Positions 8,421 to 37,840 of a stretch of DNA of 64,000 nt are shown piece after piece. The notes under the pieces were generated by a model, which saw nothing but the letters and a program-made list of their open reading frames with translations, ran no database searches and had not been told where the DNA came from. This DNA is from Prasinococcaceae sp. CCMP 1430 (lineage: Eukaryota; Plantae; Prasinodermophyta): contig RQSC01000308.1 of NCBI GenBank assembly GCA_013416795.1, positions 1-64,000 on the forward strand, in the 5' to 3' direction. Position 1 is the stretch's first letter. The number at the start of each line of letters is the position of its first letter. A program made the position numbers and the translations under genes.

Positions 8421-8998
8421 CGAGGACGCGCCCGTGGCCGCCGCGCGCGCGCGCGCGCGCCCCGCGCCCGGATGTTTTCCTGGCTCCGCGGGCGGCCGTC
8501 GGCGCCGGGACGCGGCGGGGCCCCGCCCCGAACCAGGGTCATCCGCCCGCTCCACGCCGGTGCGTCGCAGGTCCAAAACGACGCACGGTCGTGGGCCGCC
8601 CACGCGGGCCGCAACGCGCCCACGTGCTGCGCACGCGCCACCGACCCATGCACATGCACACGCCCGCCCGCCCGACAAGCGCACCGCAACACACAGAGAC
8701 GGCGCAGCGACCTCACATCAACAAGGGGAGCCAGCGCAGCCCCGGCCAGCCCCTGCACGTCTGTGGCCAGACGCCGTCGCGTCACGCAGCCCCAGCCAGC
8801 CAGCAGCAACCTGCGGCCGCGGCCCGCGAGCGAGCACGCGAGCGTGCGCACTGCGCAGTCGGCTGCTGCGTGCTGGCGCTACGCCGTGGGTGCACGTGAC
8901 GTACATGAGCCCCTCACACACGCGCCCATCCGTCCTCCCTCGCAGCACCCCGGCTCCCCCGTGAGCGCAGAGGCGCCGCACCGCAGGCCCATTGGCGC

Positions 8999-10486
8999 GT
9001 GAAGGCGACAGAAGNCGGCGGGCCGCGGCCTTCCGATGGTGCGGGCGCGGGGGCGGCCAAGGGGGGCGCGCCTGCGCAGACGCCAGCCCCCGCGCCCGCG
9101 AGCGTGCGGGAGGAGCTTGAGCGCGTGGGCGCCCTGCCGGCGAGGTACGAGGCTGCGCGCGCGTCGCTGGTCACAAATGCGCCTCACCTCGTCCAAGTGC
9201 ACTGCGCGCCATCGCCGCCGTTCAACGAGGCGACGCTGAGCGTCGTGCTGCTTGAGGGCTACCCCGCGGCCGACTGCGGCGCAGTGTGCAGGCTTCGCTC
9301 CAACGCGCTCGACGCGGGCTTCGTGCAGCGCGTGGAGGCGGCCTGCCAGGCGGCCGCGGACGCAGGCGCCGGCGCTTGCGGCCAGGCGCTCGCGGCAGCG
9401 GAACTATTCGCGCGCACCATGGCACGCGCGCGCCTCGCGCCGGCATTCGACGAGACGAGGAAGATCAAAGCGCTGGTGGCCGGCGCGCGCGTCCTCGAGT
9501 CCAAAGGCCAGCTCGTGCTCCCGCTCAGGGAAGGCAAGTACGCGCTACCCGTGCGCGTGACCGTGCCAGCCACCTATCCCGCAGAGGTCCCGCAGATTTC
9601 CCTCGACCGCAGCAGCGCGTGCACCTTCCCCAACGAGTTTGTGGTCTCCTTCCTGGCGCAGGCTGCAAAGAAGGCAGACGCCGTGCATCGCGGAGGCGAC
9701 ACGCAGCCGCCCAAGGGCGATGCTGCCGCAGTAGCCGCCACAGCAGCGGGCGACGGCGGTGGCGACAGAGCGAGCGCACGCGGTACCGCCCACCAGGCAT
9801 CCGTCGTGGCTGCGCATCGCGCGGCCGTGATCAGGTCGAACCAGCAGGAGGTCGCTGCAGCGCAGGCAAAGGAGGCCGCGACCCGCAACGCCAGGGCCGC
9901 GGCCAAAAAGGCCAAGCTGGAGTCAGAGCGCAAGCCATGGCACGCGCCGCTGAACCCGAAAAAGGAGCAGAGAGCGGCGCTCGAGGCCAACGCGAGGCGC
10001 AACCTGCCAGAAGGAGACGAGGCCAGCACCGCGGGGCGACGGCGCAGGAAGGATGCCACCGCCGCGAACGGCAGCGCCGCGAAGTGCCAGCCAGCGTACG
10101 ACCCCTCGCGCACGGACAAGTGTCTCCTGCCTATGGTTCGATTTCTTTACGAAAGTTGCGTGCAGGCCTTGCCGCGGTCAGTCTGCCCCTGCTGCGGCGA
10201 GCGCGTGCTGCCTTCGGACCCCTCGGAGCTCCCCTCGCAGCCTGCCAAGCTACGACCCGAGCGATTGGTCTGTGGGCACTGGTACCATCACCATTGCTTA
10301 GCCGAGTACATTGCCCACCCGCCCTTCGGTAAACGCAAGCTCTGCGCGGATCCGTCTTGCGGCCGAGTGCTTCTGAGCGATGCGTTCAACACCAAGGAGC
10401 ACCACCTCGCAAAGGCGTGGCAGATGAAGGAGGCGCGGGCCAGAGAGATCAAGGACGTCACTGACTTCTTCGCGCTCAAGATATGA
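8999..10486 (+). CDS. RWD-like domain plus C-terminal RING-H2 finger protein (putative E3 ligase); start uncertain because of the N at 9015
   Basis: RWD-like LPVRVTVPATYPAEVPQI; RING-H2 CPCC...CGHWYHHHC...CADPSC; TGA at 10484-10486. Confidence 0.7.
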   Translation: MKATEXGGPRPSDGAGAGAAKGGAPAQTPAPAPASVREELERVGALPARYEAARASLVTNAPHLVQVHCAPSPPFNEATLSVVLLEGYPAADCGAVCRLRSNALDAGFVQRVEAACQAAADAGAGACGQALAAAELFARTMARARLAPAFDETRKIKALVAGARVLESKGQLVLPLREGKYALPVRVTVPATYPAEVPQISLDRSSACTFPNEFVVSFLAQAAKKADAVHRGGDTQPPKGDAAAVAATAAGDGGGDRASARGTAHQASVVAAHRAAVIRSNQQEVAAAQAKEAATRNARAAAKKAKLESERKPWHAPLNPKKEQRAALEANARRNLPEGDEASTAGRRRRKDATAANGSAAKCQPAYDPSRTDKCLLPMVRFLYESCVQALPRSVCPCCGERVLPSDPSELPSQPAKLRPERLVCGHWYHHHCLAEYIAHPPFGKRKLCADPSCGRVLLSDAFNTKEHHLAKAWQMKEARAREIKDVTDFFALKI

Positions 10487-10662
10487 TGAAGTCAGGCGGC
10501 ACGGCGGTAGTCATTCTCCCCCCCCCCCCTCTCTCTGGCAGGCCAACCCGATCGCGACGGGGCTGGCGCTGCAAGAGCGGCACCATCGCGTATCTGGCAG
10601 ACACCACGTCGTTGGTCTTATTATACGCCACTGTATATTACTGTATGTATCTCACAACAATT

Positions 10663-13600
10663 TCAAGCGCCCCGCTGCTCGCGGTACTCCTGGATTTTGC
10701 GCTTGCGCCTGCCGGCCTTCTTCTCCGCGCGCCTGACCTTGCGGCGCGCGTCCGCCTGCGGGTCCAGCAGCGCGCCGAGTGCTCGCTTGCGCTTGCGCGC
10801 GGCCGCGGCGGCCTTCTTGCTGGCGCGCAGACCCGTCACCGCGTCGACGAATGCCTCCGAGCCAAGCACCTCCTGCAGCAGCGACTCCACCTCGCTGCTG
10901 AGCGAGCCAAGCACCTTGGCGAGCGCGGCGGAGGTGTTGTTTGCCGCCTCATATTCAGCCGCCTCCGCAGCCTCCTCCTCGGCCTCCTCGAAGACCTTGA
11001 GCGAGCGCTCCTTGTTCTTCTTGAAGCTGCGCTTGGCGATTTCTGCGGCCTCCTTTTCGGTGGCCGCCTTGGCAACGGTGCGCCCGCGCATGACGGGCTT
11101 GAGCAGGAGCTGCGCATTGGGCACGAGCGCCTCACGGTCCAGCGTGGCGGCCACTCCGGCGACTACCTCGAGCGCGTAGCGCACCTGCAAGTCTGCACCC
11201 TGCGCGGCCAGTCGAGCCACACGAGCCAGCATCCAGCCGAGCGCTGCGCCCACCGCACCGCCCGCGGCGGCCGCGGCAGCGCGCCCCTCATCCTCCTCCA
11301 CGTCCTCATCCTCGACCATCTCCTGCTCTTCGTACGCGTCGCCCTCGCCGTCGGCGACCGCGCCGAACATGGCGTCAGCTGCCACGGCTGGCGTTTCGTG
11401 CAGCAGCCTGGCGAGCGCGATCAGGTTCTTGACACCCTGCTCCGCCAGAGTGCCGCCCTCGACGTCCGTGGACACAGCGCGCAGCTGCGCGTCTGCGAGC
11501 GCGCGCAGCCGCGAGCACGGCGCGCTCCACGCGGCGGAGCGCAGGCGCAAGCCCAGCACGCGCGAGGCCGCCGAGCGCACCCATGTGTGCTGGTGCAGCA
11601 GCAAGCACGGAGCGCACGCGTCCGACCACAACGCCTCGCCCTGCGGAAGCGCCATGGTGCCCGCCGAGCGCGACACGAGCTTCTCCACCAGCAGCAGCGA
11701 AACGTACGCCTCCCGCCACCGTTCGGCGGCCGCGCCGTCGGCTGGCGACATGACGCGCTGCTCAGCCTCCTCGAGGATGGGTCGCAGCGACCTGCGCAGC
11801 GAGTCGACCGTCGGTTTGCTGTTCGACTCGAACATCTCTTGCGAGGCATCTGCAGCCAGGCTGAGAACCTGCATGCCAACGCAGCGAAGCTGCCAGTTGT
11901 CGCTGCCCATCAGCGAGCGCACGGCGGCGCCCAGAGAAGCGCGGCTGGCTGCGCTCGCGCGCGCGAGCATCACCCGCAGCGCAGCGCCAGAGGCGGCACG
12001 CGCGGCAGCGTCGGGGTCCTCGGTGAGGCGCTGCGCGAGCGGCGGCATCATCGCGGGAACCATCTCATCGAGCAGCTCTTGTGGCAACTGACCGGCCACA
12101 CCCTCCAGCGCGCGCGCAGCCGCCACCCTGCCCGTCGGATGCTCGTAGGTGAGGTTGACGAGCAGGAACTCAACGTGCTGGCGCAAGCGCTTGGGCCCAA
12201 GAGGATACTCGAGCAGGAACTGGATGAGCGCGCCGTGGCTCTGCTGGCGCACGCTTGCGTGCTGGCTCTTCACCAGCAGCTCTTGCACGCGTCCCATGAT
12301 GTCGTACACGCTGTCAATGACAACGCGCCGCCCAAGGATCACCCGCAGCAGGCGGAAGGTGGTCGCCTGCGTGGAAGAGTCCTCGATGTCGGTGAAGGAG
12401 CTCTCAAGCAGCGCGCGCAGTTGCGTGTCCGTGGCGTCCCAGCCGCAGTTGGTGTGAAGCAGCGACGTGAGGAGCTTGATGCACTCCTGAGAGAGCGCCG
12501 AAGTCGCCGAAACCCCGCCGCGCAAGAGTGACAACGAGCGCCGTGCAAGCTCCTGCGTATGCCCACGCAGGGTGGGCAGCGGGTAGCGGCACATGATTGC
12601 CAGACACTTGAGCGCCAACGTCACGACCGCGGTCGAGTGCTGCCGCATGCAGCGCGCGAGGACCGGCACGAATGGCGCGAGCAGTTCAAGGCGCGTGGGC
12701 TCCACATCGACCGTGGCCTCCTGCTCGCCGTCTTCTCCGCCGGCCGGCTCGCCAGCAGGAGTGCCTTCGACGCCAGTGCCCTCGTCCGCAGCGTCGGTCG
12801 CCCCCGCGCCGGCGGCGGGCCCAGCCGCGCCAGCTCGTGCACCGCCGCCTCCATGGTTCCGGCCGCGCCCCCCGCCGGTGCCGTGCTTGAGAAAGGTAAG
12901 CAGCATCTGGAGCGCGAACTCGGCTAGCATGGCTTCACCGCTGTTTTTCTTGCCCAGGACGGCGAGGCGTTGCTGCTCGCGCGGCGCCACGCGGCCCTCG
13001 CCGCCTGCTGAAGCGGCAGGCGCATGCGCGTCGAGCAGCGAGTGCACGAGCAGCAGCAGCTCCTGCGGGCTAGCAGTGCGGTTGGCCAAGAAGCCGCGCG
13101 CGAGAGCGCGCAGCATCTCCGCCACGCGCTCGCGCACGCGCGGCGATGTCGAACTCGGCACATAGGACGCGACGGCATCGACCAGACTGGACACAACCGC
13201 TGCGTCCGCACTGAAGTGCACGGAGCGCGCAAGGATGGCCAGCGAGTCGTACGAGCAACACTTGCGCGCCTCCTTGCCTTTTGAGGCGATTTTGCCCACC
13301 TTGCGCTCCTCCGCGGCCAAGCCCATCACGTCCTCGGCAAGGATGGGAACGAGTGGGTCCACACTGCTGTCCAGGTCACCAGGAGCAGTGCTCGGGTCTG
13401 CCGCGACGCGCTCGAGGATGGCGTGCAGCGTGTAGCCGAGCACGTGCAGCTGGTAACCCTTGCGCAGGCTCGTGCACAGCGCAGCGATGATCTGCGGCAT
13501 CTCTCGCGCGCCCACAACCCGCGCGACCCCGATCAGCGCCTCGCGCGCGCTGTCGCGGACGTCAGGCCCGTGGCTCGCGAGCGCATTGGAGGTGGTCTGG

Positions 13601-16600
13601 ATGGCCGCCGCGCGCACGTGTGTGAGCTTGTCGGCCTCCTCAGGCAGCGCCTGCACCACGCGAACGATGGCCATCACTATCGGAGCGCGCACCACACCGC
13701 CCTTGACGTCGTTGATGATGAGCGCCTGCAGACCCGGCAGCACGCCGCGCATGAGACCGGCGGCAATGGCGCCGCGCGGCGTGCCGCACGGCGGCGCCGC
13801 GAGCGGGTAGGCGCTGACGAGTGTCGCCACCGCGCCGACCTGCGCCGCGTCGCGCCTGCTCTTGCCGCCCCGGACGCCCCTCACCAATCGCATGAGCAGA
13901 GTGTGGAATCGCCCCCAGTGCATGCGCCCACACACAGCGCTCAGCGCAGCCACGGCAGCGGCCTTCATGTTGCCGTCCGAGCCGCTCTGCGAGTCTGACA
14001 GGATGCGCGCGCACATGGGCGCCCATAGCCCCGACAGCACGCCCTGCGAAAAGGTCGTCGTGTCCACGTTGCCCCCCTCGACGCCCTCGGACGCGGCGGC
14101 TTGCTGTTGCCTCGCGAGGGCTGTTTCGCCCTCGGCCATACCGCGGCACTCAGCTGCCAGCCGGTGCAGCGCTCGCACGCGCCTGTGTTGTTGCAGGTGG
14201 ACCATATTCAGAAAGAAATCCACCTCCTCATCGTCGCTCAGCAGGCAACGGAGCTGCGTGAATGGAGCGTACGGCAGCTCGAGCGCGCACAGGCGGAGCA
14301 GCGACAGGAACTCATTCTGTGCCTGTGGCGAACCTTTGCGAACAGCGTCCATAGCCGACGGCAGCACCGACGCGAGCATGACACTGTGTAGCGAGCGCCC
14401 AGCGACCGACGCGCTAGCGTTGCCATCAGCATTACCACCGACGTCCTCGCCCACACCATTCGCATCCTCCATGTCAGCGTTTTGACCTACGATTGCGTGA
14501 CCCTCGGGATCGGCAGCACACGCGTCTTCCACGCCTTGAGATGCACCGGCAGCCTTCACGAGCTCCGCCAGCGACGCGCTAGCACTCGCACGGACGGCCG
14601 TGTCGTTGGAGTTGAGGTCGAAGCACGCCTGGTGTGCGAGAGGCAGGACCGCCGCTGGCGCGAGCGAGGCGTATAGCTTGGTGTCCATTTTGCGGTACGC
14701 GCCGATGCGTGCGTCGTAGTCGGGCTCGTCGTCGATGCTTTCGGCGTCGTATGCATTCAGCGCTGCCAGCAGCTCACTGGCCGAGCGCAAGTCAGCGCCC
14801 GCTGCCGGCAGGCACGAGGCGCCGTCGAGCGCCGCCGCGAGCGCCGTGCGGCCCGCACGGTCGGAAATCATTGCAAGCAGGCGACACATGGGCGGCATGA
14901 CGTCGCGCAGGAGATCAGCCCCTGCGTTGGCATCAGCGTCTGAGCCCTTCGCGTGCTCGGCGCTTCGTTTGCACGCGGCAGCGACAACGTTGAGTGCTTC
15001 ACGCACGGTGGCAGAGCCAGCGGCACGCGCGGTCTTGCCAGCGGCCTGAAGTAGCGGCACAGCGGCGCATGCTGTTGCGGCGACATGCTCCGCAGGCATG
15101 CGCGCCGCGAGCGACGCGAGCACGGCGAGCTCACGCACGTACGCCTGGTCGCCACCTCGGCGCGACGCGTGTGCATTGTGCCCACCCGTGCTACTGTTGA
15201 CTGCCGCAGCCGCGCTGAGCCGCGTGCGTAGCTGATCAAGCAGCTGCGATAGCACAGGCTGCAGAAGCTCCGCGCCGAGCTCGCCACCGTCGTGCTCGAG
15301 CAACGCCTCAATGACTGCCAATGCCTCATCCTCGATGAACGCCTTCGAACGCGCCACGTTCACTCCACCCCTCCCTCCAGAAACCTTGCTACCATTGAGG
15401 TGCAAACAGTCTACAATGCGCGGGAGGACGTCCGCACCCTCGGACGCGCCAATGGTCAGGTGCCGCACAAGAGTTGGGTCGGCTGCCAGTGCCGCTGCCA
15501 GCTCAATGACTGGCGGGCACTGCGATCCCTCACCCGCCGCCGCGGTGGCGTCTATCGGCAGACGCACGATGGCATCTCCTGCCGCCGCGAGCAGTGAGTC
15601 GAGGAGCAGCGGCGAGAGCATCTGGGGTTGACGGCGAGCGACGAGCGCCACCAGGCGTAGACACGCCGCGCGACACGCGCGGATCGTTGGCCCGCCGCCG
15701 GCCATCGCAGGCGATGCCAGCTCCTGGTAGCAGCGCACCACAATTGCCATTAGGGCTTCTGTGTACCTCAGTAAGCCCATGCTGAGTGAGTCAAGCAGCG
15801 TGTTCATGAGTCCCAGCGTGCCCAGCAGGCGCTTGGGCTGCACAGCGCCCACCAGCTGAGCGCCCTGCAGCCCCTCAACGAAGGTGTCCCCGGCGTCGAC
15901 GAGCGTAAGCGCCCACGCCTCCCCCATCGCGCGTTGTGGCAGCGATTCGCGCGCCGCCTCGCCGCCAGTGCGCGCGAATGCCGCCGCGAATGGGCGAAGC
16001 AGCAACACCATCACGGGGAGCAGCTCCTCCGTGGAGAGTGAGCTGAAGGCGGTCAGCACGGCGGGCCTCGCCGTGCGCGCGCTCTTCTTCTTTCCCGATC
16101 CTCGGCCGCCCTGCTTGAGCCTCGGCCACATGGCGCGCACGAGCAACACGAGCAGGCAGGCGCGGTCGCTGTCCTCGATGGCACCGCCGCTCGCTCGTCG
16201 CTCGAGTGAGAAGCGCACGAGTTCTTCACGGATACTCGTCGGGTAGAGCATCTTGCGCACGTGCTCGGCGTACGGCACGAGCTCTGGGATCTCAAAGCGT
16301 CCCAAGGCGCCGAGCGCAAGCTCCTGCATCTTTGGCTCGTTGTCGCTCAGCAGCTCCTCCAGCGTGGCGCGGATGGCGCCCGCACGAGCGCTGCTACGCA
16401 ATTTCTTCAGACCACCGATGACGCGCAGCCATTCGCCGAGGCACTCACGCCAGCCACGTGCCGAATATGAGCGCAGGCGTGGCACCTGGCCGCCGTCTGC
16501 GCTGTCGCCAACTACGAACACCAGGAAGAGTTCGGGGATGCGCAGGCCGACCTTCGTCTCCTTGTCATCCTTGACGTTCAGTGACCGTGAGCCCACGATC

Positions 16601-32197: not shown

Positions 32198-32887
32198 ATG
32201 TCCGTGCGCTCGCTCGCTCAGGAGTGGCTTTTTGGCAAGAAGAAGACGCCCGCGGAGCTGCTGCGCGAGAACAAGCGGCTGCTCGACAAGAGCATCCGTG
32301 AGCTCGACCGCGAGCGCAATGCGATGTCTCGGCAGGAGAAGGCCCTCATCGGGGATATCAAGAAAATGGCAAAGCAGGGGCAGGTGGGCGCCGTCAAGGT
32401 GATGGCAAAGGACCTCGTGCGCACGCGCAAGTCGATAACGAAGTTCTACCAGCTGCGCTCGCAGCTTCAGGGCGTGTCGCTTCGCATCCAGACGCTCAAG
32501 AGCACGCAGACGATGGGCGAGGCGATGAAGGGCTGCACCAAGGCGATGGCGACCATGAACAAGCAGTTGAAGCTGCCCAGCCTGCAGAAGATCATGATGG
32601 ACTTCGAACGGCAGAACGAGAAGATGGAGATGACGCAGGAAGTGATGGGCGACGCCATCGACGACGCGCTCGAGGGCTCCGAGGATGAGGAAGAGGCCGA
32701 GGAGCTCGTCAGTCAGGTGCTCGACGAAATCGGCGTGTCGATGGACGCGTCACTCGTGGCTGCGCCGACGGGGCCCGTGGGTGCGCAGGCGCACGCCGCG
32801 CCAGCCGCGCCGACACCCGTTGCCGAGGGCGCGGACGGTGGCATTGACGACGACTTGCAGGCGCGACTCAACAACCTGAGGCGCTGA
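32198..32887 (+). CDS. VPS2: ESCRT-III subunit VPS2/CHMP2A
   Basis: LFGKKKTPAELLRENKR, VKVMAKDLVRTR, SQLQGVSLRIQTLKS, C-terminal MIM1 DDDLQARLNNLRR. Confidence 0.96.
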   Translation: MSVRSLAQEWLFGKKKTPAELLRENKRLLDKSIRELDRERNAMSRQEKALIGDIKKMAKQGQVGAVKVMAKDLVRTRKSITKFYQLRSQLQGVSLRIQTLKSTQTMGEAMKGCTKAMATMNKQLKLPSLQKIMMDFERQNEKMEMTQEVMGDAIDDALEGSEDEEEAEELVSQVLDEIGVSMDASLVAAPTGPVGAQAHAAPAAPTPVAEGADGGIDDDLQARLNNLRR

Positions 32888-33086
32888 GACGCACCCACAG
32901 TACCATGGCCTGCGAGCGCGGGTTCGGCGCGTCACGGCGCGCCTGCGCCCGCGCGCAGCGAGTGTAAATTTCCTCCCCGCTAGAACGACCAGCGCATGGA
33001 CTCGGTGCGGCGCGCGTGTGCGCACAGATGGGGCATGATATAAAAATGGTGTCGACCTATCTCTCTAGGGCGCGGCTACGCGCTGT

Positions 33087-35799
33087 TCACCGCGCGCTCC
33101 TGGGCTTCCACTCGCACGCCGACACGCCCGTGTCGCCCTCGGCGGCCGCGCCGCCCATCAGCGCCTCCGCGTAGTTGGCACCCCTGCCTTTGGCCGCCTT
33201 GAGCAGCTCGGCCGCCTCGTCGACGGTGAGCGGCTTGGGGCGGTCCCTGTCGGCAGCCACGATGCACAGAAAGCCGAAGGGCTCCGACGCGTTGGGCGCG
33301 CAGCGGAACTTCACGCGCGCGCGTGCGCAGGGACGCGCGCGTATGCGCGCAGGCGGTCGAGGTCAGCATGGCTGTGCGCCTGGGGCGTCGGCGCGCATCG
33401 GACAGAGCGAGCGGGTTCGCGCGCACGCGCGACACGCACGCACGACAGCGCGCTTCCCCTACCTGGTGGGCGTGGTTCGGGGCAGTGTACACGACGTCGC
33501 CGAAGGACAACGGCACGATCTCTGGCCCAAGCTGCGCCTCGCCTTGCCCGCGAATGACCACGACGGTGTGCTGGTGCTCGTGGCGCTCGAGCGTGGAAAA
33601 GCCGCCCGGCGCACATTCGAAGTAACGTGTGTGCTGCGCGGCGCTCTCCCCGCGCTTGCCGATGAGCTCAACGCGCGACACGCCCTTGAATGTCGAGCCG
33701 TCCTGCTTGTATGCCTCAACGGGCACGCCCGACCAGCGGAAACTGCTCGGAGAGAAGCGCAGCACCTTGCTCTTGTCTCCTTCAATCGTGAATGTCGACA
33801 AGCTGCTGAGCATCTCCTCGATCGACCAGTCGTCCGGGATAGGCAGGGGCCTCCTCTTCGCAGGCACAGGCGCCGATGGCGCCTCTCGACGCACGGCACT
33901 CTGCATGAGCTCCCCTACAGCCGCGGCGCCGCCGCCCACGCTTGGCGCGGGCAAGGGGCTCCCGCGGGTCGCGGAGGTACCGCCACCTACGTCTGGCATG
34001 GGGAGAGGGCTCTTCATCGCGGCCGCCCTCGACCAATCGTTCTCCTCGTCGCGGCCCATGACCATGGGCGTGAGCGCTGCCGCCGCCGCCGCGCCGCCGC
34101 CAACGGTCGGTGTTGGAAGGGGACTCTCCAGCGCTGCCGAGGTGCCACCGCCGACGTCCGGCATGGGCAGCGATGGCACCGACGACTCGGCCTCCTCACC
34201 CATCGCCATGCACCTAAGCGCCACCGCTGACAGGCCCTTGCTTGGAGACATCGCAGCGGCGAGGGCGCGCCCGGCGGGCGTCAAGGGGTGGGACTCAGGG
34301 GCGACCGAGCTCAAATGCTGCATGGTTGGCGGCGGCGTGGCCGCCTGGCCGTTCTTGCGCGCGAGCATCGCGCTGGGCGAGGGTGGCGGCGCGTATGGCC
34401 CGTTGCGCCCGGCAGCGTCTGCAAACGCGCGCGCGTTCGCCTCGAGGTCGGGACCCGCCTGCAGTAGCGCGCCGCCGATGAGGAAGAGCGTGTCGTCGCC
34501 GAAGGTCTCGCGCATCTCAGTGCACCTGTGCAGCTTCATGCCACCCGCTGGGCACGGCAGGGCAGGCCTGAATCGGCCCATGGGCCGCCTGCACCCCTCG
34601 GCCACCGCCTGGCACTCGTCGGGAGTGAATTTGAAGCGCCCGCCCGCGTTGGGGAAGATGACCGCGTCAGCGCCCAGAAGGCGCGGGAGCGTGCCGAAAA
34701 GAAAGTCGTGCGTGAAGCCGCCCGCGTCGCCGCTCGAGCCCGACAGCCAGCCGCCGAGCATGGCGGGGTGCAGTAGTATGGGCAGCCCGAAGTTGGGGTC
34801 GGCCGCCAGCTCGCGCATGCAGTCGAAGCCCGTAATTCCCGGCAGGAGCATGATGGCGCCGCAGCCCTGATCCTTGGCGTACCAGGCGCGCTGCAGCACC
34901 TTGGTGCACGGCGCGTTGAGCGAGGGCGCGTACAGGCAGTTGCGCCCGGTCTCGGCGTTGGCGAGCGCAACGGCGCGCGAGCACATGGCCACGCGCTCCT
35001 CGAAGGGCGCCCACACCTGGTCGGCCAGCCCGTGGTCATCCTTGATGATGTCACAGCCGCCGCGCGCAAGCAGGTACGCCATGCGCGCGAGTTCGGCGCT
35101 CGACTTGCCCATGGGCTTGAGCGCCGTCATGAGCAGCGGTGCGCGCGACACGCCGAGCATCTTGCGCAGGCCTTGCACGCCGAAGCGTGCGCCAGGGAAC
35201 ATGTTCGTGTCGGCGAGCAGCTTCGGCGAGAGCGTCACGTCGACCACCGCCACCCCGGGCTTGAGGCTCGTGTTCCCGAAGACCACGTTGAGCCACTGCG
35301 TGAGCTCGTCGCCGGCAGTGTCGTTGGGGTACGCGATCGATACCCTGCGCGCGCGGGAGCAATTGCGTGTGTGAAGAAAGGGGGGGAGGGGGGGGGGGGG
35401 TCGCCGGGAAGGGCGTCAGGTCGCGCATACCGCATCGCTGCTGGGGCACGCCGGCGCGGGCTCGGACGCCCCTGCGCGGCGCGCACCGCTTGCGTGCGCG
35501 CACCTGTACTCCTCGCCCTCGGTGATGGGCGCGATGCGCTCAATCGAGCCCACCACGTAGGGCATCACCTCCTGCACCGCGGTGGTATCCTCAGGGAGCT
35601 CGACGGTCTGTTCGAGGCACGCTTCCCACGCGCGCGCACGTGCGTCGTCGACCGACGACGCCTTGATAGCATAGTCCACCCAGAAGCGCTCGGGATGCTT
35701 GAGGTCGTCGGGCACGCGCGTCGCCGGGTAGCCGCGCACCGCCCCGTCGACGACGGCGCGCATCGCGCCGTCGCTCTCGCCGCCGCGCCCGGTGCACAT
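33087..35799 (-). CDS. rlp: RuBisCO-like protein (form IV, R. rubrum-type) fused to a C-terminal cupin (exons 35799-35504, 35344-33463, 33308-33087)
   Basis: CLEQTVELP, WLNVVFGNTSL, LKPMG, IIKDDHGLADQ, GADAVIFPNAGGRF, PAGGM, LIGGALL. Cupin: YFECAPGGFSTLERHEHQH...GDVVYTAPNHAHQ|FRC..FGFLCIVAADRDRP. Both introns splice in frame. Confidence 0.92.
33905..34190 (-). repeat. Two-copy tandem repeat (period 165 nt, 55 aa) in the RLP-cupin linker
   Basis: LPMPDVGGGTSA..SPLP.P.VGGGAAA occurs twice; ggcatggg anchors at 33995 and 34160. Confidence 0.8.
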
Positions 35800-36268
35800 G
35801 CCGCCGCCGCGCGTATGCGTGCGCGTGCGCGCGCGCGCGCGAGTCGGCTGCCAGAGGAGAGGGAGAGCGGGCGGTGCGCGGAGCGATGTGAGGGTGAGGT
35901 TGGGTGTGTGGGGGGGGGGGGTTGCAGCCAGGGCGCCGCTGCCGCCACCGCCGCCGCCGCGCGGTGTGACAGGCCAGGCCCGCTCGCCCGGCCGCCGCAC
36001 GCCGGCGAATTTCCCGCCAATCCCCACTTTCGCACCGCGGCCTCAGCCCGCGCGAAAAGCATCTGAGCGCATTCCGTCGGCCGCGAAATTAGTCGGACCC
36101 CCCCCCCCCGCCCCCAGCCGCGGCCGCCGATCGCGATCGGCGCGCTGCACGCGGCGACGTTACTACGCTCAAATACGTGGATAAAATACACACGGGCGAG
36201 CTTCGTTGCCCAGATGCGTTGAGATGCTCGCGCGATGTGAGTTAGATGGGGGCGGGGCGGGGTGGGGT

Positions 36269-36529: not shown

Positions 36530-37840
36530 ATGCCCGCCGCGCCGCGGCTGCTGCCGTCGGCGCCGCCGGCGGGCGAAGCAGGCGCGTGGGAGGAGGTCGC
36601 CGGAGGCGGCGTGACCGAGCCTGCGGGATTCTCCGCGGCTGGCGTCGCCGCGGGGCTGCGGTCGAGCGGCAAGCGCGAGGACCTCTCGCTCGTGCTCTCT
36701 GATCGCCCCGCCGCAGGGGCGGGCTGCTTCACGCAGAACCGCGTGTGCGCCGCGCCCGTCACGTACTGCAAGCAGGCGCTCGAAGCGATGGGCTACGAGG
36801 GCGTGCGCGCGGTGCTCACCAATGCGGGTCAGGCCAACGCCGCCACCGGCGAGCAGGGGTGGGAGGACTCGCTCTCCGGCGCGCAGGCCGCTGCCGACGC
36901 GCTTGGCGTGCCCCGCGACGCCGTCATGGTGATGAGCACGGGCGTCATCGGCCAGCGCATCAAGATGGAGCCCTACCTGGCGTCCATCCCGGACGCGGTG
37001 GCCGCGCTGGGCAGCTCGGCCGAGCATGGCACCGCCGCTGCGGAGGCCATCACGACCACTGATCTCGCGCGCAAGCAGGTGGCCGTGCGCGTCTCCCTGC
37101 CCTCGGGCGGCTCCGTCAGCATCGGCGGCATGGCCAAGGGCTCCGGCATGATCCATCCCAACATGGCGACAATGCTGGGCGTGGTGACCACCGACGCGGC
37201 CGTGGCGCCTGAGGCGTGGCGCAAGATGCTGCGCGCCGCCGTCGCGCGCTCCTACAACCAAATTACCGTCGACGGCGACACCTCGACCAACGACACGGTC
37301 ATTGGCCTCGCCAACGGCGCGGCGGCCGAGGGCGGCGTGCAGCCGATCTCCGACGCGGACAGTGCCGACGGAGCGGCGCTCACGGCTGCGCTCACCGCGG
37401 TGTGCGAGGCTCTGGCCAAGTCAATCGCGTGGGACGGCGAGGGCGCGACGGTGCTCATCGAGGCGAGCGTCACGGGCGCCGCCAGTGACGCCGACGCGCG
37501 CGAGATCGCCAAGTCGGTGTGCGGTTCGAGCCTGGTGAAGAGCGCGGTGTACGGTCGCGATCCCAACTGGGGCCGCATCGCCGCGGCTGCGGGGTACGCT
37601 GGTGTGGAATTCGACCAGGCGGACCTGTCCGTTTGGCTGGGCGAGGCGCAGCTCATGAGCCGCGGCCAGCCGCTCGAATTCGACGAGTCGGCCGCAAGCA
37701 AGTACATGGCTGACGCGGGCGACTGCCGCGGCACCGTGCGCATCGGCGTGCGCGTGGGCGACGGCAGCGGCTCGGGCAAGGCGTGGGGATGCGATCTGAG
37801 CTACGACTATGTCAAAATCAACGCCGAGTATACGACGTAG
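36530..37840 (+). CDS. argJ: ArgJ ornithine/glutamate N-acetyltransferase; true N-terminus or transit peptide uncertain
   Basis: GFSAAGVAAGL, FTQNRVCAAPV, NAGQANAATGEQG, STGVIG, AITTTD, GMAKGSGMIHPNMATML (autoproteolytic Thr), VDGDTSTND, DGEGAT, DPNWGRI, CDLSYDYVKINAEYTT. Confidence 0.96.
   Translation: MPAAPRLLPSAPPAGEAGAWEEVAGGGVTEPAGFSAAGVAAGLRSSGKREDLSLVLSDRPAAGAGCFTQNRVCAAPVTYCKQALEAMGYEGVRAVLTNAGQANAATGEQGWEDSLSGAQAAADALGVPRDAVMVMSTGVIGQRIKMEPYLASIPDAVAALGSSAEHGTAAAEAITTTDLARKQVAVRVSLPSGGSVSIGGMAKGSGMIHPNMATMLGVVTTDAAVAPEAWRKMLRAAVARSYNQITVDGDTSTNDTVIGLANGAAAEGGVQPISDADSADGAALTAALTAVCEALAKSIAWDGEGATVLIEASVTGAASDADAREIAKSVCGSSLVKSAVYGRDPNWGRIAAAAGYAGVEFDQADLSVWLGEAQLMSRGQPLEFDESAASKYMADAGDCRGTVRIGVRVGDGSGSGKAWGCDLSYDYVKINAEYTT

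Follow-up and report, generated by a model that had tools for sequence, protein, structure and literature searches.

The minus-strand gene at 35799–33087 in contig RQSC01000308.1 of the alga Prasinococcaceae sp. CCMP 1430 raises the question of what chemistry is carried out by a RuBisCO-like protein (RLP) that is joined to a cupin in one polypeptide. All coordinates refer to the stretch of DNA analyzed here (positions 1–64,000 of the contig, 64,000 nt; hereafter, the window). The protein probably provides a one-polypeptide 5′-methylthioadenosine (MTA)–isoprenoid shunt, where the RLP domain would be a 5-methylthioribulose-1-phosphate (MTRu-1-P) isomerase and the cupin would remove the methylthio group. 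The basis for this bifunctional reading is homology together with domain linkage, from which we infer the substrates, products, thiol, cellular location, and physiological role. The MTA–isoprenoid shunt has so far been described in a few proteobacteria only.

Read from the DNA and translated, the gene has three exons with a coding sequence of 2,400 nt, specifying a protein of 799 aa. Exon 1 (35504–35799; all features of the gene are on the minus strand) is defined by sequence reading, translation, and a transcript contig reaching 35811; its start ATG is at 35799, a second in-frame ATG is at 35763, and inspection of the open reading frame (ORF) found no in-frame ATG upstream of 35799. The product of exon 1 is a 34-residue N-terminal extension followed by the start of the RLP N-domain (HPERFWVDY...). 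Intron 1 (35345–35503; 159 nt, GT..AG, phase 2) is followed by exon 2 (33463–35344), which encodes the RLP catalytic barrel, the linker in full, and the initial 118 cupin residues. Intron 2 (33309–33462; 154 nt, GT..AG, phase 0) splits the conserved HQ|FR. The remainder of the cupin, with its GF.C.V / RD.P motif, is encoded by exon 3 (33087–33308), as is a tail of 49 residues that runs to the TGA stop codon (33089–33087).

Both introns are spliced out as modeled in one 2,443-nt contig of run X1 (presumed to be RNA), which covers the whole coding region and matches the window with zero mismatches at 33056–33308, 33463–35343, and 35503–35811. The intron 2 junction is also found in three marine metatranscriptomes (X2, X3, and X4), one of which (X2) contains the intron 1 junction as well; these contigs are 95–100% identical. 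P0002, a 677-aa homolog that is 79% identical, is colinear over both junctions (..YR|VS..AYPND.. and ..NHAHQ|FRC..). The RLP-cupin gene is expressed in culture-derived and field material. The transcript contig removing both introns bears out the original prediction of one spliced gene with two introns, and, on the matter of whether transcripts would reveal two separate genes, a single mRNA spans both domains. Because the RLP barrel, the linker, and most of the cupin are in one exon, the fusion is independent of the splicing model: exon 2 by itself is one uninterrupted 627-codon ORF, on the translation of which Pfam detects both RuBisCO_large and Cupin_2. The exon 2 translation and P0002 served as proxies for the spliced 799-aa protein in remote searches. 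All of the motifs that had been quoted for this gene were found (KDDH at 35043–35032, GADAVIFPNAGGRF, PAGGM, FRWSGVPVEAYKQ, FKGVSR, RYFECAPGGFSTLERHEHQH, and GFLCIVAADRDRP), with HQ|FR spanning intron 2.

The RLP domain (34405–35697, residues ~35–412, with intron 1 inside it) matches Pfam RuBisCO_large at 2e-18 (67 bits vs. a curated cut-off of 30.1), and retains all of the invariant columns of alignment A1. The best match among solved structures is 3QFW (E 5e-61, 209.6 bits), followed by weaker matches to Bacillus subtilis MtnW (2ZVI; 130.7 bits, 5e-37) and the Chlorobium RLP (1TEL/1YKW; 114 bits, ~6e-32), with true RuBisCO structures reaching at most 92 bits (1e-25 or weaker). By Foldseek, the AlphaFold (AF2) model of P0002 aligns to 3QFW with a template modeling (TM) score of 0.90 and a root-mean-square deviation of 2.5 Å, and to MtnW structures with TM scores of 0.79–0.83. 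Foldseek labels 3QFW as a Rhodopseudomonas palustris RuBisCO-like protein, and RLP2 of this species is 2QYG; 3QFW is therefore RLP1. RLP1 has been demonstrated in vivo to be an MTRu-1-P 1,3-isomerase (PMC5893883), and both RLP1 and its Rhodospirillum rubrum ortholog are DeepYkr RLPs that convert MTRu-1-P to 1-methylthioxylulose-5-phosphate (MTXu-5-P) (PMC5893883; PMC4958253).

In a residue-by-residue alignment to 3QFW and 2ZVI, KDDH and FGN are common to the algal RLP and 3QFW, where MtnW has KDDE and FGK. The KDDH motif (35032–35043) covers the carbamylated-Lys and metal-site positions, with His in place of the Glu of RuBisCO and MtnW. By alignment offsets, the Lys of the MtnW FGK is Lys98 of the Geobacillus enzyme, and the algal RLP has Asn at this position; Imker et al. 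in 2007 are said to have identified Lys98 as the catalytic general base of the MtnW enolase. This RLP1-like signature (KDDH, Asn at the enolase-Lys position, and a non-Lys residue at RuBisCO K177) is invariant in alignments A1 and A2. The residues of bona fide RuBisCO are not complete in the algal RLP (KDDE→KDDH, K177→Met, K334→Arg), and the NCBIfam RuBisCO models score no higher than 95 against cut-offs of 438–497. Scores for the NCBIfam MtnW equivalogs are likewise far under their cut-offs (PRK09549, 185.9 vs. 409; TIGR03332, 136.9 vs. 513.6). Taken as a whole, these comparisons support an RLP of the R. rubrum / R. palustris RLP1 (DeepYkr) kind rather than a YkrW/MtnW enolase. The R. rubrum-type assignment that had been proposed for this domain is upheld by the 3QFW match (best in both sequence and fold), KDDH, and the Asn, and a grouping with YkrW/MtnW enolases is not what the equivalog scores indicate.

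Shared by the algal RLP and Rru_A1998 / RLP1 (RPA2169, 3QFW) are KDDH, Asn at the enolase-Lys98 position, and the K-P-x (non-Lys) motif; the GADA..FPN.GGRF and PAGGM segments are also common to the algal protein and RLP1 (3QFW), and both would be tied functionally to an Rru_A2000-type cupin. The algal RLP differs in being fused rather than co-operonic, nuclear, and intron-interrupted. With the Bacillus/Geobacillus MtnW (YkrW clade) the algal RLP has in common the RuBisCO large-subunit fold and membership, here predicted, in methionine salvage, but it is set apart by its sub-cut-off scores, the replacements of Lys98 by Asn and of KDDE by KDDH, and a fold match that is poorer than to 3QFW.

The cupin domain (33237–33816, residues ~609–750, with intron 2 inside it) is homologous to Rru_A2000 (3JZV), 3IBM, and 3KGZ. 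It matches Pfam Cupin_2 at 4.5e-7 (29.9 bits vs. a curated cut-off of 27.2); the part encoded by exon 2 alone matches 3IBM at 8e-25, 3JZV at 1e-17, and 3KGZ at 1e-15, and the complete P0002 cupin can be aligned over its whole length to each of the three, the part that corresponds to exon 3 included (3JZV, 2.9e-22). DddK-type dimethylsulfoniopropionate (DMSP) lyases and other cupins give weak PDB matches (E ~1e-3 to 1e-4). An exhaustive search for the family yielded 276 cluster representatives at E ≤ 1e-10, 190 of which were aligned (151 standalone, 39 fused). The window protein keeps every position that at least 90% of these 190 cupins conserve: a Trp, a Tyr, an Arg, RYFE, GG, LE.H.H.H, G.G, an Asp, HQ, GF.C.V, and RD.P. 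Among them are the H-E-H-Q-H of cupin motif 1 (33568–33582; His687, His689, and His691 of the conserved LE.H.H.H), which is the presumed metal site, and the family-invariant Cys741 of GFLCIV (33264–33266), which aligns with the Cys of GFLCMV in 3JZV. There is no acireductone dioxygenase (ARD) hit in Pfam at E ≤ 0.1, and no ARD chain among the PDB matches. A standalone cupin homolog with 57% identity is named S-methyl-1-thioxylulose 5-phosphate methylthiotransferase by JGI.

A cupin homologous to the characterized MTXu-5-P methylsulfurylase Rru_A2000 is supported by these data, and the proposal of a methylsulfurylase-type cupin is sustained by the 3JZV match and by the retention of all family-invariant residues. 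The likeness to Rru_A2000 (3JZV) / RPA2170 extends over a full-length alignment in which RYFE, PGG, LE.H.H.H, HQ.R, GF.C.V, and RD.P are conserved. Unlike Rru_A2000, the algal cupin is C-terminal, placed behind a 193-residue linker and followed by a 49-residue tail, and its sister group in the cupin tree consists of standalone bacterial cupins that are not seen beside RLPs.

The linker that connects the two domains (33817–34395, ~193 residues) is composed of 18% Ala, 16% Pro, 11% Ser, and 10% Gly, and contains an imperfect internal duplication (..PLPMPDVGGGTSA..SPLP.P.VGGGAAA.. twice) and a CGC triplet run (34075–34101); a tandem-repeat search of the linker DNA found nothing besides the CGC run. 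In the AlphaFold model of P0002, the equivalent linker has a predicted local distance difference test score (pLDDT) below 50, with both domains near 90, and the linker is predicted from this model to be disordered. Its length among homologs is 27–194 residues. The GC-rich, CGC-repeat part of the linker (34010–34120) coincides with a spike in metatranscriptome depth and with many loose contig ends, most likely representing cross-mapped low-complexity sequence of other transcripts. At the other end of the protein, acidic residues occur several times among the 34 residues ahead of the conserved HPERFWVDY, and hydrophobic stretches are lacking (maximum Kyte–Doolittle mean over 11 residues, 1.0). 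By hydropathy only, as no targeting predictor was run, nothing in the N-terminus resembles a signal peptide and there is little to suggest a transit peptide, in line with the lack of an obvious transit peptide in the original prediction, which proposed a cytosolic enzyme.

The proposed route would begin with the conversion of MTA to MTRu-1-P via MtnK or MtnP, and then MtnA. The RLP domain would catalyze the 1,3-isomerization of MTRu-1-P to MTXu-5-P, and the cupin, tethered by the disordered linker, would hand the methylthio group on to a thiol, for example glutathione. The products of the cupin would be 1-deoxyxylulose-5-phosphate (DXP) and a methanethiol equivalent, the latter of which could be recaptured into methionine. 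The physiological point is probably oxygen-independent sulfur salvage or the removal of MTA, and DXP could arise as a by-product and not serve as a major supply for isoprenoids. That the cupin acts on the product of the RLP is indicated by the recurrence of RLP-cupin linkage in a eukaryotic clade, in bacterial fusions, in a Syntrophomonadaceae operon, and in R. rubrum and R. palustris, where the RLP and cupin genes are linked (PMC4958253). The fusion can be regarded as a "Rosetta stone" and as independent support for the functional coupling found in R. rubrum.

The RLP-cupin fusion is widespread in eukaryotic algae and is not peculiar to the source alga. Eukaryotic fusions of 550–830 aa make up many protein-database clusters, and include a Euglena gracilis transcript, a 707-aa intronless gene that is situated among eukaryotic genes (LSM, Kelch, Gemin7) in contigs of up to 1.2 Mb, and a 706-aa cluster placed in Chlorophyta by ESM Atlas. 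Some of these eukaryotic proteins have a second C-terminal cupin (P0013:655-828, P0017:590-772). The claim that an alga carries both domains in one polypeptide stands, within an architecture found in many eukaryotic clusters and, in similar form, in bacterial fusions. The latter (P0067, P0116, P0263-P0374) are proteins of 520–615 aa with short linkers of 27–50 residues, and one of them (P0067, L084:8001-9602) is encoded beside LpxK and Kdo-transferase genes. The bacterial short-linker fusions are like the algal fusion in domain order and conserved residues, but have shorter linkers and fall into separate clades in both domain trees. Their ESM Atlas clusters are in Planctomycetota and Pseudomonadota under the automatic name "DK-MTP-1-P enolase family" (referring to 2,3-diketo-5-methylthiopentyl-1-phosphate), which is probably a misannotation.

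Diatom-type relatives (P0005, P0010, P0021, P0033, P0034, P0042) have a transketolase/DXP synthase-like domain in place of the cupin; examples are Thalassiosira exigua ACHAWF_017510 and MMETSP transcripts. An RLP of Skeletonema menzelii, for which no partner domain was detected, groups with these RLP-transketolase proteins. The diatom fusions and the bacterial mtnK-mtnA-tkt-tkt-RLP operons contain the closest named relatives of the algal RLP, and share the same upstream logic of methylthioribose to MTRu-1-P, but differ from the algal fusion in having a thiamine-diphosphate transketolase-like enzyme, rather than a cupin, as the partner. Eukaryotic fusions of consecutive methionine-salvage enzymes are also represented by MtnBD and MtnAK of Tetrahymena (PMC3698126; PMC6302742), although these involve other enzymes and the oxygen-dependent canonical route.

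A scan of one genome per prokaryotic species recovered at least 560 bacterial RLP relatives, the best 80 of which (L001-L080; 45–53% identity) were examined for gene context. MtnA is encoded near the RLP in 11 of these 80 loci, and an MtnK-like kinase in 6; where a transketolase adjoins the RLP, mtnA and mtnK are often located upstream. In RefSeq, Brucella anthropi pOANT04 (8765–14186; L087) has the order mtnK-mtnA-transketolase-transketolase C-RLP. The co-operonic arrangement of the nearest bacterial RLPs with mtnK and mtnA makes MTRu-1-P the likely substrate of the RLP group. The transketolase-linked operons look like an uncharacterized, transketolase-dependent MTA branch, on which our literature search found no paper. 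The two loci with a cupin are both from Syntrophomonadaceae, and encode an aminotransferase, the cupin, a Cys/Met pyridoxal phosphate (PLP) enzyme, a coenzyme A (CoA)-binding protein, and the RLP (L020:330-4924, with a class-V aminotransferase). The PLP enzyme belongs to the O-acetylhomoserine sulfhydrylase family, which fits the logic of methanethiol recapture in R. rubrum, where a sulfhydrylase has this role (PMC4958253). The RLP group has two alternative downstream partners: a cupin and a transketolase.

The RLP tree was built from a careful search (58 rows). Eukaryotic RLPs form one clade in this tree (ultrafast bootstrap 100, SH-aLRT 97). The window RLP pairs with P0002 (100/99), and this pair branches at the base of a clade of 20 rows (100/100), the crown of which is composed of the diatom-type transketolase fusions. 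The RLPs of the bacterial short-linker fusions are set apart in a long-branched clade of their own (100/99), and 3QFW is the best PDB match for all three RLP clades. In the cupin tree, the eukaryotic fusion cupins cluster (81), with standalone bacterial cupins as their sister (95), and the internal groupings mirror the RLP tree, which suggests one ancestral eukaryotic fusion with the two halves evolving together. Independent origins of the eukaryotic and bacterial fusions appear to be favored rather than established: in approximately unbiased (AU) tests, a single clade of eukaryotic and bacterial fusions is not rejected (p = 0.45 for the RLP, 0.09 for the cupin). Bacterial ancestry of both domains is supported by the trees, and the gene is probably horizontally derived; the horizontal acquisition that had been suggested agrees with the nesting of the eukaryotic RLPs among bacterial RLPs. 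Although the named relatives of the neighboring ArgJ gene point to Viridiplantae, the RLP-cupin gene has its place with diatom-type sequences and outside the Chlorophyta fusion cluster. This conflict between gene tree and organismal tree may stem from ancient paralogy or from gene transfer among algae.

Several observations weigh against a shunt of the R. rubrum kind. The identity of the algal RLP to RLP1 is only ~35–45%, and the algal RLP is nearer (~50%) to the RLPs of bacterial mtnK-mtnA-transketolase operons; the eukaryotic RLP clade is positioned inside a clade with proteobacterial transketolase-linked RLPs (100/99), and the R. rubrum and R. palustris sequences are in neither domain tree. 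The expectation of a cupin beside the closest bacterial RLPs is contradicted: a homologous cupin is within 4 kb of the RLP in only 2 of the 80 loci, vs. 51 of 80 in which the RLP adjoins a split transketolase, nearly always directly downstream (e.g., L004:705-4936, L054:407-4915). The algal cupin's closest standalone relatives in bacteria (55–58% identical) have no RLP nearby in any of the three contexts examined. The upstream gene encodes an AidB-like acyl-CoA dehydrogenase in two (L083:1427-3582 and the 221-kb contig of P0202) and a 424-aa product for which there are no Pfam data in the third (L081:3-1795), and in two of the three the cupin overlaps the stop codon of this gene. The cupin family may have more than one function, and its closest standalone members are possibly unlike Rru_A2000. 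Lastly, the methylerythritol phosphate (MEP) pathway is plastidial and the N-terminus of the algal protein is without a clear targeting signal, such that the use of DXP is uncertain. The same architecture might therefore perform other chemistry, either because the RLP acts on another 5-substituted ribulose-1-phosphate (such as 5-deoxyribulose-1-phosphate from radical-S-adenosylmethionine (SAM) waste, 1,3-isomerized directly to DXP), or because the cupin does not remove a methylthio group (but, for example, epimerizes a 1-methylthioribulose-5-phosphate side product or cleaves a different C–S compound). The uncharacterized state of the nearest, transketolase-linked bacterial RLPs, the lack of an RLP beside the nearest standalone cupins, and the weak matches to DddK-type lyases are all compatible with this, and MtnK and MtnA accept 5-deoxyribose derivatives. 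However, the cupin scores 40–70 bits better to Rru_A2000-family structures than to DddK-type structures, and keeps the invariant Cys and His residues; fusion or operon linkage of RLP and cupin recurs; and a cupin would be needless if 5-deoxyribulose-1-phosphate gave DXP directly. We consider such other chemistry unlikely.

Far less probable is a fused version of the canonical oxygen-dependent salvage, in which a DK-MTP-1-P enolase of the MtnW type would be linked to a cupin resembling acireductone dioxygenase (MtnD). Among NCBIfam models, the two equivalogs of the MtnW enolase do score highest, the automatic name of the bacterial fusions refers to the enolase, and acireductone dioxygenase is itself a cupin; but the equivalog scores are too low, Asn stands at the position of the enolase base Lys98, KDDH takes the place of KDDE, ARD is matched in neither Pfam nor PDB, and 3QFW is well ahead of the other matches in both sequence and fold. 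It is hardly credible that one gene has been read into a bacterial contaminant, a mis-assembly, or a pair of neighboring genes. Neighboring transcripts can be joined in Logan contigs, and P0001, called as an ORF in prokaryotic style on a metagenome contig that is nearly identical, continues through intron 2, which makes its predicted C-terminus false. Against an artefact, both domains are on the uninterrupted 627-codon exon, two spliceosomal introns are removed in RNA, the flanking Snf7 and ArgJ genes are eukaryotic (ArgJ being nearest to Viridiplantae), GC content is uniform over the window, and the architecture recurs in dozens of independent clusters. The RLP isomerase–methylthio-removing cupin remains the reading that we prefer.

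Eukaryotes are said to use the universal oxygen-dependent pathway for methionine salvage (PMC5893883; PMC4958253). Our literature search yielded no account of an RLP fused to a cupin or to a transketolase in a eukaryote, or of an algal shunt, although an earlier mention in passing is possible; nor was a functional study of a eukaryotic fusion found, as had been anticipated. A conserved and expressed fusion in many algal lineages suggests that phytoplankton have a second, oxygen-independent means of MTA recycling, and a further, uncharacterized branch is suggested by the transketolase that serves as the partner in diatoms and in many bacteria. We put forward only tentatively, and with more doubt than confidence, that marine phytoplankton broadly run RLP-based oxygen-independent MTA shunts, in a cupin version (green algae, euglenids, and others) and a transketolase version (diatoms). 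If so, phytoplankton would be a direct enzymatic source of methanethiol, and by-products of polyamine and SAM metabolism would be routed to DXP or triose phosphate, either alongside the canonical Yang cycle or in its place. The cupin shunt would release a methanethiol equivalent (a climate-relevant volatile sulfur compound), and make DXP outside DXP synthase. These possibilities are relevant to methionine salvage, RLP evolution, and marine sulfur cycling, and the current annotations of RLP fusions as "RuBisCO large chain" or "DK-MTP-1-P enolase family" are misleading.

The genes that flank the RLP-cupin gene are a Snf7/CHMP2-type gene (32198–32887, plus strand) and ArgJ (36530–37840, plus strand). 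The named relatives of the ArgJ protein are all from Viridiplantae (57–63% identity), and include Tetradesmus, Chlamydomonas, Chlorella, Chloropicon, Chlorokybus, and land plants. The source is accordingly taken to be a deep-branching marine green alga with GC-rich DNA, and not a pelagophyte, which the GC content and the diatom neighbors in the RLP tree had initially suggested. GC content is 69%, and is within 65–73% over almost the whole window. The Snf7/CHMP2-type gene is convergent with the RLP-cupin gene and has a poly(A) site at ~32991, ~65 nt from the 3′ end of the RLP-cupin contig (33056), so that the 3′ ends of the two genes are very tightly packed.

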